This document shows positions 1 through 8,497 of a stretch of 64,000 bases of DNA, one piece after another; position 1 is the stretch's first letter, and each line of letters begins with the position of its first letter. Source of the DNA: Epithemia pelagica. Lineage: Eukaryota; Protista; Bacillariophyta. Under the pieces are notes generated by a model that was not told the origin of the DNA, did not search any database, and was given only the letters and a program-made list of their open reading frames with translations. Both the position numbers and the translations under genes were made by a program. The stretch spans positions 2,046,001 to 2,110,000 of the forward strand of contig OX337236.1 in assembly GCA_946965045.2 (NCBI GenBank), in the 5' to 3' direction.

Positions 1-3000
1 TTGCAAGTCGTCACGTCGTTTGCACTGCGTACCCTTCTACTGGAAGATATGTGGTTTCTTGAAGAAGGAACAGCCGTGGTTTTTTTCGACGAATCACTTC
101 TTCCACCGCGGTATGGGAAAGAGTGGTTGGAGACATGGCGTGATACTGCGCAGTCCAAATTCCTCCCTACGGTTCTGTTCCAAGGCCGCCCGTACAAGCA
201 GGTAACAGGGTGGGTCCATCGAAATAGCGATACTGAACATGTCATAGGCGACCATGTTTATCGACATTTGTTTCAGGCCATGTCAGAGCATGGACAGCGG
301 GGCATACTTATCAAGTGTCCCATTTTCTCTGCTATTGACTGCAACATCTCCTTCCCTCCGACCAATTTCTTGCAACAGCAACTTCCATGGTTTCTCGTCT
401 ACAATTATCCAAATGGGATATTTGTCCAGGCGGACTATCATCCGGAGCGCAATTGGCTTGCCATTTTCAAGAAGCTCAATGCCGAGAACAACGACAGACT
501 TACCCTTTTCCATCGTGTTTTACAAGAGAGCCCAGGCGACCGATATATCATGTCGGAACTCAGGAGCGTTTGGGAGCGCTTCCAACTCCAACAGCAAGCC
601 AATGCGCAGAAAGTGGAATATGAGAAAAAAATGTCAGACGCTCTGGCTCAAGCCAATCAAAAGCATACAGTCCTCCCTCCACCCATCATTGAGCCCAGTA
701 AAGCCTTTAAAAAGTACTGTGCGATGGTCGATACGAGAGTGACGGAACAATTAGAGCATTGCTTTGGGAAATTCAACAACATCTTCGAGAAATTTCTCTC
801 GGAGCATGAGATGAGGCAACTAGCGAATGAGCTGGAACAACGACTACCACAACAATTCAATGCCATAATGGGATACAGTGGATACGCGAGGAAAATTGAA
901 GAGGCTCCCGAGGATGAACGAGCAATGCTCCGGAAAAGGTACAGCTTGGACGTGTTCTTCCAGTTTGTTGTGCAAGCACGCAAACACAACAATCATCTCC
1001 TTGTTCCTTTTGGAATTGTTTTTGCCTTGGCCCAGTATGCATGTGGGCATGGCATGTTGGCCACACAGATTCCGGTTTGGTTTGGACTTTCAGTGTCCAA
1101 GCGAACCATGGAACGAAGGGTTGCAGAATGTATCAACAGCTACGACACAAAGGTACAGCAATCAATAAGGAATGTGACCCATCTTCTCTGCGTATTCGAC
1201 AATTTGCAAGACGGTCGATTGCTACAGTTTCAGCGGGGTCAAAGTGCTATATATACACGCGTGACTGCCCGCTTCGTGATGGCCATGTATCTTGAACGGC
1301 TACCTACGTGGGTTTATTCCTTCCTCGCGAGACCCGAACTGACGTACATCCAACAGGCAATACCGTCGCCCTACCATTTGCCAGCCTTCGAACGTAGCAA
1401 GGACTGTAGTATTGGTGCTACCTTACGATCTGTTTTTGACGGTACATACATCTCCGATATTGAACAAACTGGAAATGCGTTTGATTGTTCAGGAAGCCGC
1501 GTGCGATCTTACGTTCAACTCATTGGCCTATGTCAACAACTACAGTGCCTCAAGCGCTTTCTGTCGACGAGGCGAAAGCCCGACAAGGGCACTGATTACA
1601 CTCTACAACCTGTCAAATTTGCAATCGACAAAAAGAGGGCACTAGTATGCAAGGCAATGAATGGTTTGCGAAAAAAGCGAGACACCAATATTTATTCCGT
1701 TGCACGGCAGTTCCCATCTAAATTGGTTCGGTTGTGGCGTCATATCCCTCCAGTGGCCGAGTTATTGATACTTCCTGTCTCAGTCCTAGATGAAACAACT
1801 AAGATTGGCGTATCTGGGATTATTCTGGACTTCATGGTGACCCATGGTCTCCTTGTATGGGATGCCGGTAAGAGTGTGTACAAGCCTGGTGCCGATTGGG
1901 AGACAAAATGGCTCTTTGTGGTGGGAGATGGACTCTCGATAGAGCGCATGTTTCAGTTCTTTGATGACGTTATGAGCATCATTGATTCAAAGAAGATGTC
2001 TTTTCGGAATGCATATCGCCAGGCAATGTCTATTAAGATGGTTCTGCACCGAGTGGTGCCCATCACTGGCGACCTCCACGTGCGGTTTCATATGCTAGAG
2101 TCCATTTATCGATTGTTCCATGGAGGCTTTCTGCAGTGTCTACAATACCGGCTTAAATAGAAACGGCTGGATGCTGTGGACGTCTCGAACAGCTATCGTC
2201 TTTCACATCGTTTGGTAATCCTCGTATTCGAGGAGTTGGACCGCTTAATGCTCGACACATATGTCTGCAATCATCTTTCGGAACAGAAGATGAAAGGTTT
2301 CTTGGACAAGGGTGAGGTCGAAGAACTGGCCGTTTTTATTTCGAAGGATTACTTGGGATTCCTAAATCGCCAGGTACGAGAAAGTTGTTACTGGCTACGT
2401 CGCTTTCTTTGCAATTATCTTCTGATGGTCCGAAAATATGTAATGTTCTTGGAAGCGGAGCAACAAGGAGATGCAGTTGCCATGGAATCAATGGTGGTCG
2501 AGTTTCTGCCCTATTTCTACATAGCAGGAAAGACGACATCCTTCAATATCCAACTGCGCCTCATGGAGTTATACTACCATGGATTGCCTATTTCGGTTCT
2601 ACAGCAAGTGAGATTAAATCGAACCAAGAGACAAAAACCAGGCAGCATTCCGTTGTCTTTCCAGAAAGAGAGCGCCTTGGACCAAATCATGGAAAGACTG
2701 ATGCCTTTCTTCAAGGCTATGAACCATTTGGGAACAGAGGCATCATTCGTTAAAGTCTCACAAATGCTCACGGCATGTCAACGTGCCAAGCATTTCGTTG
2801 AGTTTTATACCCGTACAAGATCTGACGGCGAATATGAGCTTGCAGAACGTTCACTAGAAGATCAAAGTCCCACGGATAAAGACGTTGACGAGTACAAACT
2901 TGCTGATCCAGGGCAACGAAACAAGAGCACAACCTATCCCAAGAGCAGGGTCAACCGTGCTCTTGTTACCGAAGTGTTGGTATTAGCTGAATGCCATGTG

Positions 3001-3927
3001 ATTCCAGCAGATGGAGGGGGGTCGATTGCAATCGATGTGGACCACTTTTGGCAGGCGTTAGATAAAACCTCGTTGGAAGTGCAGAAGAAGGTGCGCCGCT
3101 GTGGTTCGGGAAAAGTGGAGAACAATGCAACTGATGAATTTGTACTGGTTCAAGCAAAGGGCATGATGGAACGACTGACTAAGGCGAATGATAGTACAGC
3201 CAATCAAGAAGAGGAAGTCGATGACACAATGGATGACGACGAAGAGTCCGTCATTGACTTAGAGGACGCGATGAAGGAACAAGACGCCGAAGCGACGGTC
3301 CATAATCTGTCAGTGTTCAGCGACGATGAGGAGACTGCCGTCCTTGATATAGAATATGGGAACCCTGAGTTCTGTGGCACCCAACCAAGCGTTGAGCTTG
3401 AACCGGACGACGCTGAAGATGGCAAAGAAGGTGAAGCATATGAAGCGGAAGAGGAATGCCAACTCCAGGAAACGCAACTTGACGACATCATCAATGACGA
3501 AGCCACTGAAGGACTGGAAAAAGAGGACAATGATGGTGAAGATGATGAGGAGGCATCACAGACTGATGGAAGTCAACAAGAAAACCCCGGAGAAGAGGGG
3601 AATGATTCCGGATTAAGGGAGAAAGGTGCAGTGAAAGGTATGAAGATTGTGAAGATGAATAAAGTGGCGGCTAGAGATGTTGTATCAGTGGCGTTGGAGA
3701 AAATAGCAGAAAAAAACATCATTGCCGGACGAGGTAGAGAAACAGAAAGGAAGGAAAGAGAGGACCATTTTCTTCGGTACAAGTTGTATAAGAGGCTTGA
3801 AGACATGGAGGACGAGGGAAGTATATTGGATTTGTCAGACGGCGAAAATGATGTGGCATCAGGTACTGAAACTAGATTGGATCGTGCCTCAATGTGTTTC
3901 GAAGAGTTCAAGCAATCGATTCATTAA
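1..3927 (+). pseudogene. Large DUF6589-like putative RNase H-fold (DDE) transposase ORF, 5'-truncated by the window edge and interrupted by one in-frame TAG (2158-2160)
   Basis: ORFs 1..2160 and 2176..3927 are in the same frame and read RLK*KRLDAVDVS across the stop, compatible with TGG(W)->TAG. Motifs CVFDNLQ, VVGDGLS.ERM, GDLHVRFH and ALDQIMERLMPFFK resemble the DUF6589-type D..GD..H..E pattern. Long acidic C-terminal tail. Confidence 0.55.
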
Positions 3928-3952
3928 GTAGTTTAAGGATAGTAGTAAATGA

Positions 3953-6130
3953 TCATTCAAAAAGATTGAAGCCCAACCACGATTCATCGCGATTCATCCT
4001 AGGAGTTCCGTCTGGAAAGTAGCCCAGGCTGGCCCTAAGTTGGAATCCCTCAGTCTCTGGGACAATGATTTGGGCAGCAAAGCATTTCATTAAGAGTGCT
4101 TTGGTTCGCTGCTTGGCAGAGCGTGGATTCTTCAAGTGGAATACTCGTTTTGCAAATATTTTCTCTGGCTCGCCAGCAGTATCGAAGGTCTCAAATTGTA
4201 GTAGTTGGTCCAAAAAGCAGTCCTTGCGGAGGGATCGCTTTTCAGTTTCGAGCTTTTGTGTAATAAAAATTTCCACAAAGTATGCTTTCAAAGCAGTCTT
4301 GTCGACCTTGCCGTCCAAGGGGGTGGAGAGGGAGGATGTTGAACATTGCCAACAAGCATTGTTGCATTTTCTTCCTATATCACACACTGCTGGACGAAAG
4401 GGGTGCAACATTTTCGATTCAAGCTGGCAATGGAGGCATTGACCATTCGACAGACAAATGAGAGACAAAACAGGAAGCAAATTACGCCATTGCCGCTGAG
4501 ACAGATCGTCATACGAGATTGGTACTGTACCGGCAGACTGCTTGGACTGTTCTTGGCTGTGCACATCGCTAGGCTGATTGGTATTATTCTTGTTTTGCGA
4601 CGCTTCATACTTGGGGATTACGAATATGCGGGTCATTAGGGCAACAAGGCTGTTGAATGAGATAACAACAGTAAATGAAGAATTAGATGGTGATGCATGA
4701 GAACTCCTCCCACAGCGTCCCATACATTGGAGAAAGTCTTCGATGGTGGCAGGGAATCCGTGAAAAATGACATGATTGACATCTGAACAATCGATGCCAG
4801 AACTTGTGGTTCCGGCGGTAGCAAATAGTGCAATTGGGTCGAAGCGTAGTTCACGGCCAGTGGTTGGACACTCATCTAACAAAGGTTGTCCCACGAACAT
4901 TTCTGTGTTGTGAAATTTCTGTTCACGGAACATAGTTCCGTGAACAAGAAGAAGGTCTTTCTGAATTCCGTGGTGATTGAGTGCCAGTCGACTCTTCGTG
5001 AACAGGTTGATCAAGGCTTTCCTGGAATTGGAATAAACGATTAGCTTTTGGCCTTTGTTGGACCGACTGATAGTGAGAAGGTCACTTTTGATATGGCGAA
5101 TGGGTGACTCTTTAAATGAGAGGTTGATAAATACGTTCCTCCGTTGTACACCGGAATGGGAAGAAGGCCAAATGAGATCTCGTTGCAAATCAAAAGAAAG
5201 GCCAGTCAGAGCCAAAAGATCGTTGACCATACTTTGAGACACTGTGGCCGTCATGAAAAGGATGGGAATTGGGTGCTTCGTTTCTCTGAGTATAGTTCGA
5301 AACAAACATTTCCGTAGTTGTCCAAATTCCGCACGAAATTCCATTCCATGGCTTGCATAGAGATGACATTCGTCAACAGAAAGAAGGCGAAGGGTCCCAT
5401 TGCGACAACAAGCAGCAATAGTCTGCTGCCATAATGGATCGTTGGTGATCTTCTGGGGCGAAGAAAACAAGAAGACATGTTTGTTGCTTGAGGCGTCGTT
5501 TTTTAGCCCTTCGAGATGATTGCGGAGAGCCGTGTTGAGTTTATCTGAACGCAAAACGTCAAGATTGAAGACTTGCAGGCGCCGACCGAGACCTTGGGAC
5601 AGGGACAGTTGCGACAATTTGGCGGTTTGATCCGCGGCCAGACTGAGTAGGGGCACGATGGTAATGGTAATGCCGCCACATAGAATGCCAGCGACATCAC
5701 GGACGGCGGATTTGCCACCACCTGTAGAACGGACAAGAAGGATCGGCCGCAGTAGGGAAGGGGCGTTGATGATCCTGGGGGTGTGCCGAGTAAGGACGTC
5801 TCCACATGCCTTTAGTTGCCACGGTCGGGCGGTTTTGCCATGCCAATCCGAGAAGCGCAATAAAATGGACTGTTCTAGCAATGGCAAACTGTAGGATCTG
5901 TAGTGGGTAGTAGGAGGGAAGGAAGGAGAGTGTTTGTTGGGCGCATGGGGACAATATTGAAGCCCAGTGGAAGTGTCTTCGTTCCTGCCGTTGTTGCTAC
6001 GCGGATGGGTCTGTATGGACGTCTCGAAGCTGACGGAATTATGCCTTGGAGACCCTGGAGCCGCTTCAGAATACTCTTCCATATCATGAAGGGTTGAGGC
6101 ATGGGCTTCGTTGCGGTTTTGAAGGTCCAT
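3953..6130 (-). CDS. RecQ-family (SF2) DNA helicase, intronless, probably element-encoded
   Basis: Motif I STGGGKS, Ia IVPLLSL, II DECH, III MTAT, V TSSGIDCSDV, VI QCMGRCGR, then a RecQ-type Zn cluster (CLHC...CNNACWQC). Its stop lies 25 bp from the stop of the transposase-like ORF. Confidence 0.85.
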   Translation of the reverse strand: MDLQNRNEAHASTLHDMEEYSEAAPGSPRHNSVSFETSIQTHPRSNNGRNEDTSTGLQYCPHAPNKHSPSFPPTTHYRSYSLPLLEQSILLRFSDWHGKTARPWQLKACGDVLTRHTPRIINAPSLLRPILLVRSTGGGKSAVRDVAGILCGGITITIVPLLSLAADQTAKLSQLSLSQGLGRRLQVFNLDVLRSDKLNTALRNHLEGLKNDASSNKHVFLFSSPQKITNDPLWQQTIAACCRNGTLRLLSVDECHLYASHGMEFRAEFGQLRKCLFRTILRETKHPIPILFMTATVSQSMVNDLLALTGLSFDLQRDLIWPSSHSGVQRRNVFINLSFKESPIRHIKSDLLTISRSNKGQKLIVYSNSRKALINLFTKSRLALNHHGIQKDLLLVHGTMFREQKFHNTEMFVGQPLLDECPTTGRELRFDPIALFATAGTTSSGIDCSDVNHVIFHGFPATIEDFLQCMGRCGRSSHASPSNSSFTVVISFNSLVALMTRIFVIPKYEASQNKNNTNQPSDVHSQEQSKQSAGTVPISYDDLSQRQWRNLLPVLSLICLSNGQCLHCQLESKMLHPFRPAVCDIGRKCNNACWQCSTSSLSTPLDGKVDKTALKAYFVEIFITQKLETEKRSLRKDCFLDQLLQFETFDTAGEPEKIFAKRVFHLKNPRSAKQRTKALLMKCFAAQIIVPETEGFQLRASLGYFPDGTPRMNRDESWLGFNLFE

Positions 6131-6160
6131 GGTGAGTACAAAGGGACCTCACTCGTTGGT

Positions 6161-6383
6161 CGCCGTGGTGAGACCGTGGAGGTGAAAATGGATTTGTATC
6201 AACCTCGAGAAATCGCCAATTTTGGAGGACGCGCCGTGGGGGTGAGAACCAGAGTGCAGCTTTTTTCCGACTGAGGCCTGCGGGACTCACTCACCCCCGC
6301 TGGGGGTAACGCGCCGTGGGGGTGAGAAAGAGTTTGCACACCAGAATCGAATCACTAAACCTCATGACTCACCCCCGCTGGGG
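6161..6383. repeat. Direct and inverted GGGGGTGAG-core repeats, probably subterminal repeats of the transposase/RecQ element
   Basis: ACGCGCCGTGGGGGTGAGAA occurs at 6229-6248 and 6309-6328. The inverted-core ACTCACCCCCGCTGGGG occurs at 6289-6305 and 6367-6383. Degenerate copies at 6161-6187. Confidence 0.75.
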
Positions 6384-6868
6384 AGTATTTGAGACCTCTC
6401 AGTTTCTATCTACCTGTTCAGGGCATCCGTAATAAAAGAGAGGTGATATTATGAGCTTAGTCAATGGTAAATGAGGTTGGAGTTTGCAACGATTCAGAAC
6501 CAGGAAGTCGTCATCTTCAGCAGAGATTTTAGGTGCCCGAACTTTCGTATCTTCCGAGTTCCGGACATTGATCGAGTTTCAGTGACAAGTCATCGTGGTT
6601 GGCACAATGAGAATCGAGACTACACGAGTTTCTTTCGGCTGTGCTTGTTGCTTCTTCCTGGTATCCGTAATCAAGAGGAGAACGATGACCAAAGAGAGCG
6701 GAGAATGCATTGGGTTTCTTTGACAAGTGGTGGACCACCAGATGGCGGCAAGAAGTATGCTTGTGCGATACTTTCTGCTTTGTAGGTCCCAAGTAATTCA
6801 AAGTATAACCAGTTTGTTACGTTTATATCCATGCCACAATATCCAGCAGTCGCGTTGCCCGGTTTCAC

Positions 6869-8497
6869 TCACACTCGCACGACACTGGCAGGTTTCCCTT
6901 CCGCCTTGTGGCTCTTGTCTTTCATCAATGATGATGAATTGGAAGAAGAGGAAGCATCCAATCGTTTAATTTCTTGTACCACATATTGGACGGCTCGATC
7001 AATGTCGTCTCTCGTGGTTGAGGGCCCGATAGACCATCGCAAGGTACCTTTTGCAACCTCCACTGGGACTTGCATTGCTTGCAAGACAGAACTAATGTGG
7101 GTGGTTGTTATTCCAGTGGCGCTGCTGCTATGACATGAGGCTCCGGCGCTAACGGCAACCAAGTGTCCAACGGTGGCCAACAAGGCATTCACGTTAAAAA
7201 CTCCACGAATGCTCACGTACAAGGTATTGGGCAAACAGTCATAATCTTGGTCCGCATGGTCGTCCTTGTGGTCCTCTTGACAACGCACAAGGTCATCGTG
7301 AGGTCCATGAACTACCAGTCGATTCTCTCCCAAGGCCAATGCCAAATGTTGGTACAAGCGTCGTTTCATGGATCGCATATGTCGCGCCCGACGGGGCCAA
7401 TCGTGCGCCGCTTGTGCAGCAGCGACTCCCATGCCCACAATATATGGCACGTTTTCTGTCCCACCCCGTCGTCCAAACTCTTGTCCTCCTCCATGAAGCA
7501 AAATATGGCCAGCAGGAGATTGTCGACTGTGTTCGTCGAGACAATTGGGTCGAACATAGAGACAGGCAATGCCCTTGGGAGCGCCTAGTTTGTGTCCCAC
7601 CAAGGTAACCAAGTCCACACCTCCCAAGGCCGATTCCAGGTGTAGCGAAACCTTGCCTGCTGCTTGCGCCGCATCCGTGTGACATAAAATGCCGTGTTGT
7701 CGACAATACTTAGCCACCTCTCGAACTGGTTGCATGGCTCCCGTTTCATTGTTGGCCAACATCAGGGTCACCAACACGACCCTGTCGGCATGTTTTTGAA
7801 TGGCTGTCACAATATCCTGTGCCGCGACACACCCGTTGCGTTGCACAGGTACATACGTGACGGTGCAAACTTGCTGACTGTGCTCCAACCAATCCAAGCA
7901 TGCGGCAATGGCTGGGTGTTCAATATTGGTTGTAATAATATGTGGCTTCTTGTTCTTTTTGTTGACAAACCAATGGCGAGTGGATTGCAAGGCCAAATGA
8001 ATGGCTAGATTGTCGGCTTCAGTACCACATGAGGTGAACCATATACTTGAGGACGGAAGAGGCAAACTGCTGTCATTGTTGTTTTTTGTTCTCTTGTCGG
8101 ACAGCGAAGATGGTGTGTCAACCAAAAGACGTAGAATTTGTGTACGAGCTACTTCGACAGCTTGTCGCGGACTTGTGCCATAGACATGGGCGCTGCTGGG
8201 ATTGCCAAAGTGTGTGGTAAAGTAGGGTATCATGGCCTCCAATACTTGAGGATCAATGGGTGTTGTGCCGTTGTAATCCAAATAAATGCAGTCGCTCTTG
8301 TTCGTTTTGCTTCCAGCTCTTGGTGTGGAAGTCCCCGAAGACAGGAAAGTGGTCGAAACTGCCACCCCTACCAGGAAAGCCACAGCCACAGTCGTGGCCA
8401 GTACCAAGAAAAATGGACGAGGATCACTGCCATCCGTATCCACACCACCACAACTCCAAAGAAATAGTTGTGTTCGGGCGGTCTCCAACATGAACAT
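6869..8497 (-). CDS. Selenocysteine lyase / NifS-like class V PLP-dependent cysteine desulfurase
   Basis: YLDYNGTTP, FGNPSSAH, HTDAAQAAGK, GHKLGAPKG (PLP lysine), GTENV and SAGASCHS. The GAxCHS form is closer to SCLY than to NFS1 SGSACTS. Confidence 0.85.
   Translation of the reverse strand: MFMLETARTQLFLWSCGGVDTDGSDPRPFFLVLATTVAVAFLVGVAVSTTFLSSGTSTPRAGSKTNKSDCIYLDYNGTTPIDPQVLEAMIPYFTTHFGNPSSAHVYGTSPRQAVEVARTQILRLLVDTPSSLSDKRTKNNNDSSLPLPSSSIWFTSCGTEADNLAIHLALQSTRHWFVNKKNKKPHIITTNIEHPAIAACLDWLEHSQQVCTVTYVPVQRNGCVAAQDIVTAIQKHADRVVLVTLMLANNETGAMQPVREVAKYCRQHGILCHTDAAQAAGKVSLHLESALGGVDLVTLVGHKLGAPKGIACLYVRPNCLDEHSRQSPAGHILLHGGGQEFGRRGGTENVPYIVGMGVAAAQAAHDWPRRARHMRSMKRRLYQHLALALGENRLVVHGPHDDLVRCQEDHKDDHADQDYDCLPNTLYVSIRGVFNVNALLATVGHLVAVSAGASCHSSSATGITTTHISSVLQAMQVPVEVAKGTLRWSIGPSTTRDDIDRAVQYVVQEIKRLDASSSSNSSSLMKDKSHKAEGKPASVVRV

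Follow-up and report, generated by a model that had tools for sequence, protein, structure and literature searches.

We analysed a stretch of 64,000 nucleotides from the diatom Epithemia pelagica (assembly GCA_946965045.2, contig OX337236.1, positions 2,046,001 to 2,110,000 of the forward strand; G000:C9:2046001-2110000 in our own coordinates), which is referred to as the window in the following. At its left edge two long genes lie tail to tail. The first open reading frame (ORF), termed ORF1, encodes a putative DDE transposase of the DUF6589 family, of which positions 1..3927 on the plus strand lie in the window, and the second encodes a RecQ-like superfamily-2 helicase on the minus strand (3953..6130). 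Both genes belong to a DNA transposon with terminal inverted repeats (TIRs), which is probably a member of the AcademH lineage.

ORF1 is open from before base 1 of the window to a TAA at 3925-3927 on the plus strand, with a sole in-frame TAG at 2158-2160. The frame continues upstream of the window for about 400 codons to a likely start Met at window position -1206 (negative positions lie upstream of the window), which gives a gene of 1,709 codons with the TAG as codon 1121. This TAG is a nonsense lesion that replaces a Trp within the family consensus WKR. Because the paralogues have Trp at this codon, and so do P0001 and P0142, two proteins of 97-99% identity in other public assemblies (P0142 being an intact copy with 99% identity), the lesion is recent; the window copy was recently disabled.

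The helicase gene is intact and encodes a protein of 725 amino acids (aa) with the Pfam domains DEAD and Helicase_C. Its stop codon, a TGA on the minus strand at 3953-3955, is separated from the ORF1 stop by 25 bases. The protein carries Walker A (GGGKS), DECH and QxxGRxGR (motif VI) motifs and is 99% identical to the public protein P0148. Its best PDB sequence matches were all members of the RecQ family (RECQ1, E. coli RecQ, BLM, WRN and RECQ5, E 1.5e-10 to 1e-5), with true RecQs matching at only about 24% identity. RecQ zinc-binding, RQC and HRDC domains were not detected by Pfam in this helicase or its close relatives, for which DEAD and Helicase_C were the only domains found, and the true RecQs in the same match list carried PF16124, PF09382 and PF00570. 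Since these accessory domains were not detected we use the term RecQ-like helicase core rather than RecQ, and by its sequence features the protein is such a core and not an orthodox RecQ.

The first-pass annotation of this DNA had described a plus-strand frame of more than 1300 codons with one TAG and, tail to tail with it, an intact intronless RecQ frame whose stop lies 25 bp from that of the first. Both observations hold, with ORF1 being longer than was visible in the window and the RecQ label being appropriate for the type of core and not extending to the accessory domains. It had further drawn the mobile unit as positions 1-6390. The repeat block at the right edge of that unit is real, the extent is not, as the element reaches from -1372 to 6308.

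These boundaries were obtained by comparing the flanks of near-identical copies. On the helicase side, homology between copies ended about 157-180 bp before the ATG, and on the ORF1 side about 1,390-1,420 bp upstream of the position equivalent to window base 1. In every copy examined the boundary at both ends was 5'-TACCCCC following a variable base, and the termini of the element therefore read 5'-TACCCCC ... GGGGGTA-3' (TA..TA). In the window copy this delimits a transposon of 7,681 bp that begins 1,372 bp before the window and has its right boundary at 6308, not at 6390. The two genes face inwards, and each starts just inside one of the TIRs. The TIRs are imperfect, have a length of about 100-130 bp, and are composed of three blocks that were common to both ends, in inverted orientation, in every copy examined: block A (TACCCCC(A/C)AGC..GGGTGAG), block B (CTCACCCCCACGGCGCG) and block C (TCTCGAGGTTGATACAAAT). 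The site CTCACCCCCRC is present in block A and block B in opposite orientations and thus occurs twice per inverted end. The hairpin potential of the element end was no better than that of shuffled sequence (z = -0.94).

Beyond the helicase start codon, repeated G/C-rich motifs extend over positions 6131-6390. The right TIR region together with the helicase 5' leader accounts for 6131..6308 on the minus strand; inter-copy homology stops here, the same blocks are found inverted at the ORF1 end, and the conserved blocks lie at 6192-6210 (C), 6230-6246 (B) and 6290-6308 (terminal A). The patterned repeat block of about 6144-6390 thus consists of this right inverted end and of 79 bp of terminal sequence (6309-6387) from a second element, which is older.

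Comparison of the flanks showed that the 7,681-bp element is inserted into this second element, with block B in the end of the latter as the target. The insertion is flanked by a 9-bp target site duplication (TSD) with one mismatch, ACGCGTCGT on the left (window -1381..-1373) versus ACGCGCCGT on the right (6309..6317, unstranded), and the uninterrupted target is seen in the intact ends of two other copies, L017 and L018. This host is a non-autonomous relative of 1,124 bp with an internal deletion. Its two parts now lie at window -2420..-1373 and 6309..6387, and the upstream part together with the left TSD copy (window -2430..-1373) corresponds to L011:7570-8627. The first 493 bp of the host match L016-type helicase-side ends (88%), and the last 154 bp match ORF1-side ends as in L017/L018 (93%). 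Two closely related subfamilies have thus contributed to it, one the helicase-side end and the other the ORF1-side end. The outer 79 bp of its ORF1-side end (6309..6387, minus strand), in which motifs B and A recur, are 93% identical to the L017/L018 ends. The host element is itself flanked by a perfect 10-bp TSD, TTTGAGACCT, with the right copy at 6388..6397 (unstranded) and the left copy at window -2430..-2421.

TSDs could be read at four sites, as most copies were read at one flank. Besides the 9 bp of the window copy and the 10 bp of the host element, a copy on C2 (L006 and L023) showed a perfect 10-bp TSD (ACAGCAAAAG), and the fourth is a 9-bp TSD on C4. There, two copies (C4:2026521-2032762 and C4:3401730-3407971) in opposite orientation and with equal search scores share the same 9-bp flank AGTGACCGG. 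Because these 9 bp are common to both copies, we read the pair as one insertion, and a later segmental inverted duplication on one chromosome is suggested rather than two insertions. With its inverted ends and TSDs, the 7,681-bp unit is a TIR-bounded cut-and-paste DNA transposon and not a pair of host genes.

Both ORFs were searched in six frames across the whole 60.5-Mb assembly, which yielded 51 matches for ORF1 and 61 for the helicase. About 30 loci contained both ORFs at a distance of 3-6 kb and in the same convergent order, with 52-66% protein identity to the window copy. Chance would by far not produce such a recurrence of the layout. Both frames were open at 11 of these loci (ORF1 1,655-1,799 aa, helicase 695-791 aa), and many ORF1 paralogues showed open frames of 1,630-1,800 aa. 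A few copies were near-identical (98.3-98.8% at nucleotide level) yet had different flanks. The dispersal of about 30 convergent pairs together with these near-identical copies in different surroundings rules out a single-copy or syntenic pair of host genes. Between near-identical copies the ratio of nonsynonymous to synonymous substitution rates (dN/dS) was 0.2-0.6. This ratio, and the 11 loci that have kept both frames open although their proteins are only 52-66% identical, speak for purifying selection on the long ORFs of both genes.

Several further observations were made on the ends and copies of this family. Of the inverted end, the outermost 55-67 bp (window 6240-6306) recur at many loci with 95-100%, mostly 98-100%, identity, among them G000:C1:931424-931549, C1:955541-955665, C1:701713-701836 and about 15 other places. 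In places these repeats stand as directly adjoining pairs with a period of about 62 bp, and they could represent a tiny foldback miniature inverted-repeat transposable element or satellite DNA that arose from the end of the transposon. At G000:C11:2567708-2580773 two full-length members are arranged head to head with their helicase-side ends about 60-640 bp apart. This arrangement and the nesting in the window suggest insertion into or beside ends of the same family. At G000:C6:3283370-3297757 an insert of about 8 kb separates the helicase gene of one copy into a C-terminal part (3287381-3287824) and an N-terminal part (3296102-3297757), which is probably another nested insertion. In P0142, a public gene model of 1,796 aa, the ATG chosen for ORF1 lies beyond the left end of the element, within the host element (upstream of the window at L001:37-294, C9:2044537-2044794). 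The start that is conserved is Met at window -1206. On the other side, about 470 bp past the transposon nest, the next gene (6869-8497, minus strand) encodes a class-V aminotransferase (Pfam Aminotran_5, E 5.5e-46).

A search of the window ORF1 pieces against Pfam gave no match except for a chance hit to NARG2_C. The DUF6589 region maps to window aa 586-905, and the TAG cuts it in two; this splitting of the domain is the reason why the pieces miss the DUF6589 model. The paralogues P0002 and P0003 scored 31.3 and 29.5 bits, respectively, and thus above the gathering threshold of DUF6589 (PF20231) of 27 bits, as did P0150 (41.4 bits) and P0295 (68.8 bits). An HMMER search of 1.84 billion representative sequences recovered 1,012 relatives of ORF1 at E <= 0.001, and 24 of the 38 long distant relatives that were scanned matched DUF6589. 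In the ESM Atlas 28 of the 30 nearest clusters were DUF6589, mostly from Basidiomycota, and no other named family was found there when DUF6589 was excluded. Nothing was found in a profile search of PDB sequences with ORF1, and no relative could be confirmed in a scan of metagenome contigs with the ORF1 alignment. A word-based protein search with the 65-sequence alignment returned the same close family only. The distant relative P0279/P0295 combines in one frame DUF6589, a Tudor domain and the beginning of a similar DEAD helicase, so that a link between transposase and helicase exists also outside this genome. The Tudor domain of P0295, located between transposase and helicase, matches the PTM/DIR17-like domain of Pfam. 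In the Pfam entry, DUF6589 is still listed as a family of unknown function.

The fold of ORF1 was predicted with AlphaFold. A first run with 18 close sequences gave a predicted local distance difference test (pLDDT) score of 52.8, and the Foldseek and VIA matches of this model were meaningless or weak, apart from an N-terminal barrel. With the 65-sequence alignment, a core of 751 aa was modelled with a pLDDT of 91.8 and a predicted template modelling score (pTM) of 0.90. Foldseek returned no match at E <= 0.001 for this model, with Transib, Hermes and P element at ranks 17-35. When its top 1,000 chains were re-aligned with VIA-align, the first 25 were all DDE transposases, led by Hermes (Z 9.4 over 290 residues) and including Tn5 (7.9), P element (7.2) and RAG1 (about 6), and the next match had a Z of 3.3. 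A scan of 48,161 chains with VIA-align, independent of Foldseek, likewise returned almost only RNase H-fold enzymes, namely Hermes (Z 8.2), Tn5 (Z 7.7), P element (Z 7.2) and retroviral integrases (Z 6-7.9, root mean square deviation about 3 A), followed by RAG1, Sleeping Beauty, Mos1 and RNase H. Sequence identity to the best structural matches (Hermes, P element, RAG1/Transib) was only 8-11%. Because the individual Z-scores are moderate, it is the uniformity of the match list which carries the argument for this fold. By this model, the ORF1 core, i.e. the DUF6589 region and the preceding 200 residues, is predicted to be a DDE domain of the RNase H-like type, into which a large all-helical segment is inserted between strand 5 and the helix with the candidate catalytic Glu. 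A small beta-barrel was also well predicted ahead of this core, within window 1-450 (window-frame residues of about 10-146), and is weakly similar to SH3, Tudor and FeoA-type barrels (Z <= 6.1).

Three acidic residues stand out by their conservation and by their location in this predicted fold. The Asp of the FDN motif (D191, 1198..1200, plus strand) was, like the neighbouring N192, invariant in 52 of 52 sequences and lies on strand 1, the first long beta strand of the core. The Asp of GDG (D436, 1927..1929, plus strand), invariant in 62 of 63, directly follows strand 4 (E430-435), and the Glu of IME (E691, 2692..2694, plus strand), invariant in 49 of 49, is part of a later helix (H686-699). 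D687, four residues before E691 in the same helix, was invariant as well (49/49). From invariance and position these residues are supported as the candidate D-D-E triad. The motif after strand 5 reads G483-x-L485-H486, with Gly in 60 of 61 sequences at the position three before H486. The C/DxxH signature is hence absent from ORF1, as the position three before H490 is not conserved either.

The first-pass annotation had proposed a DUF6589-like DDE protein with FDN, GDG and IME as the triad. The scores of the paralogues and of the distant relatives bear out the family label, and the triad agrees with invariance in 49-62 relatives and with the modelled strands and helix. Three checks that it had suggested, structure prediction, a search for co-occurring copies and alignment of their flanks, led to the RNase H-like DDE transposase fold, to the convergent pairs at about 30 loci, and to the shared 5'-TACCCCC termini with TIRs and TSDs of 9-10 bp. 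All the outcomes by which it had proposed to refute its reading thus turned out in its favour. Its view of a helicase-carrying DNA transposon is correct as well. Its statement that the element is unclassified is in our opinion not, since the helicase and the 9-10-bp TSDs match AcademH.

Helicase-bearing lineages among TIR transposons are AcademH and KolobokH (PMC10799480). AcademH elements encode a helicase and generate TSDs of 9 or 10 bp, and AcademX elements have TSDs of 3-4 bp (PMC10045372); for the original definition of AcademH (Kojima 2020, Mobile DNA 11:15) we follow the summaries given in these two papers. The element described here shows a helicase besides the transposase, TSDs of 9-10 bp (n=4), bounding TIRs and a predicted DDE/RNase H-like transposase. 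Moreover, DUF6589 has been reported as enriched in Pucciniomycotina and is centred on Basidiomycota and Puccinia, and Academ elements are most abundant in Pucciniomycotina (PMC5751038). We therefore consider it probable that the region represents most of one recently disabled copy of an autonomous-type TIR transposon of the AcademH lineage within the Academ superfamily. Several points weigh against this. The superfamily name was set by indirect features, namely TSD length, the presence of a helicase and the taxa in which both DUF6589 and Academ are found. No XPG nuclease domain, the hallmark of AcademX, was present among the 38 long relatives scanned. The Z-scores of the individual structural matches do not exceed 9.4, the TSD lengths come from four sites, and the role of the helicase in transposition is one that we purely infer.

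The first two of these points would fit a helicase-carrying TIR transposon of an unnamed superfamily-level lineage, defined by DUF6589 and a RecQ-like helicase, which converged with AcademH in TSD length and cargo. The undefined function of DUF6589 in Pfam and the lack of any other named family in the Atlas once DUF6589 was excluded would also agree with such a lineage. However, the combination of a 9-10-bp TSD with a separate superfamily-2 helicase is rare and is the very definition of AcademH, and DUF6589 is concentrated in those fungal groups in which Academ is most abundant, so that we regard an unnamed lineage as unlikely. An equally unlikely extension would be that elements with DUF6589 and a RecQ-like helicase form a separate and widespread superfamily-level lineage in which the helicase is mechanistically required, for example for opening self-complementary G/C-rich ends. 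If this were true, such a lineage, with more than 1,000 public relatives, would join the Helitrons as the second kind of transposon in eukaryotes for which a helicase of its own is indispensable.

A Mutator-like element (MULE/MuDR) would be suggested by the layout alone. MuDR elements have long TIRs, TSDs of about 9 bp and two convergent genes transcribed from the TIRs, and the long inverted ends, convergent genes and 9-10-bp TSDs found here are strikingly similar. We nevertheless rejected this affiliation as very improbable, because no MULE, Transposase_mut, DBD_Tnp_Mut or SWIM match was obtained from Pfam at E up to 1 with the ORF1 pieces, the paralogues or the 38 distant relatives, and because the C/DxxH signature, which is common to MuDR, hAT, P, Kolobok and Dada (PMC9587614), is absent from ORF1.

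Carriage of a RecQ helicase would also be compatible with a Kolobok element such as the fungal KolobokH or the red-algal Kolobok-1_CCri, as Kolobok lineages carry RecQ helicases, in one case on the opposite strand, and Kolobok has been reported from a diatom (PMC9587614). But Kolobok elements are defined by 4-bp TTAA TSDs, 5'-RR ... YY-3' ends and a C/DxxH motif (PMC9587614), and the present element fails in all three: its TSDs have 9-10 bp and none is TTAA, its ends are 5'-TA..TA-3', and ORF1 has GxLH after strand 5, in which Gly (60/61) stands in the place of C or D. Kolobok was accordingly rejected, with only a very slight chance left to it. Least probable of all is a chance tail-to-tail arrangement of two host genes, ordinary or domesticated, as might be thought from the length of both frames, the purifying selection on them and the intact helicase, and we rejected this in view of the roughly 30 dispersed copies with common inverted ends and TSDs, the nested insertion, the deleted non-autonomous derivative and the nonsense lesion.

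For the AcademH-type element, the following mode of transposition can be proposed. Both promoters would be located in the inverted ends. The transposase would bind the repeated CTCACCCCCRC sites there, excise the element and integrate it via cuts staggered by 9-10 bp, while the helicase might unwind or remodel the G/C-rich self-complementary ends, or process the gap at the donor or target site. Because of its Trp-to-TAG lesion, the window copy would now have to rely on relatives at other loci, of which about ten have remained intact.

If the assignment is correct, the helicase-carrying lineage of Academ is extended from animals and fungi to diatoms, where it forms a diverse and apparently still active family, with about 30 copies, 11 of them with both genes open, as well as deleted derivatives. 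As for the annotation of DUF6589, this domain would by the model correspond to the C-terminal two thirds of the DDE core, which is RNase H-like and has a D-D-E triad and a helical insertion like that of Hermes, P element and RAG. When the genome is annotated, the two ORFs at each of the roughly 30 loci should be treated as transposon genes and masked instead of being counted as host RecQ helicases or orphan proteins. Public gene models begin ORF1 at an ATG outside the element.

Compared to known systems, an RNase H-like core into which a large alpha-helical stretch is inserted ahead of the catalytic Glu is shared with Hermes (hAT), P element and RAG1/Transib. This is a similarity of fold and not of family membership. 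C/DxxH is absent here, and hAT and P elements generate 8-bp TSDs. In maize MuDR/Mutator the inverted ends have about 100-200 bp and each drives an inward-facing gene, the second of which is mudrB. The second gene of the diatom element is in contrast a helicase, and its transposase is without a MULE match in Pfam. With KolobokH and Kolobok-1_CCri it has in common the combination of a DDE transposon with a RecQ-type helicase, which in Kolobok-1_CCri is encoded on the complementary strand. Its helicase is a separate convergent gene, whereas its distant relatives P0279 and P0295 fuse transposase, Tudor domain and helicase in one frame. Our literature search found no paper linking Academ with diatoms, and the host, a stramenopile, differs from the published AcademH range of animals and fungi. 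The closest likeness is nevertheless to AcademH, which comprises TIR elements of low-copy, diverse families with a large DDE transposase, a DEAD/Helicase_C helicase and 9- or 10-bp TSDs. The element would therefore represent a new host record for AcademH, known from animals and fungi, and not a new kind of element.

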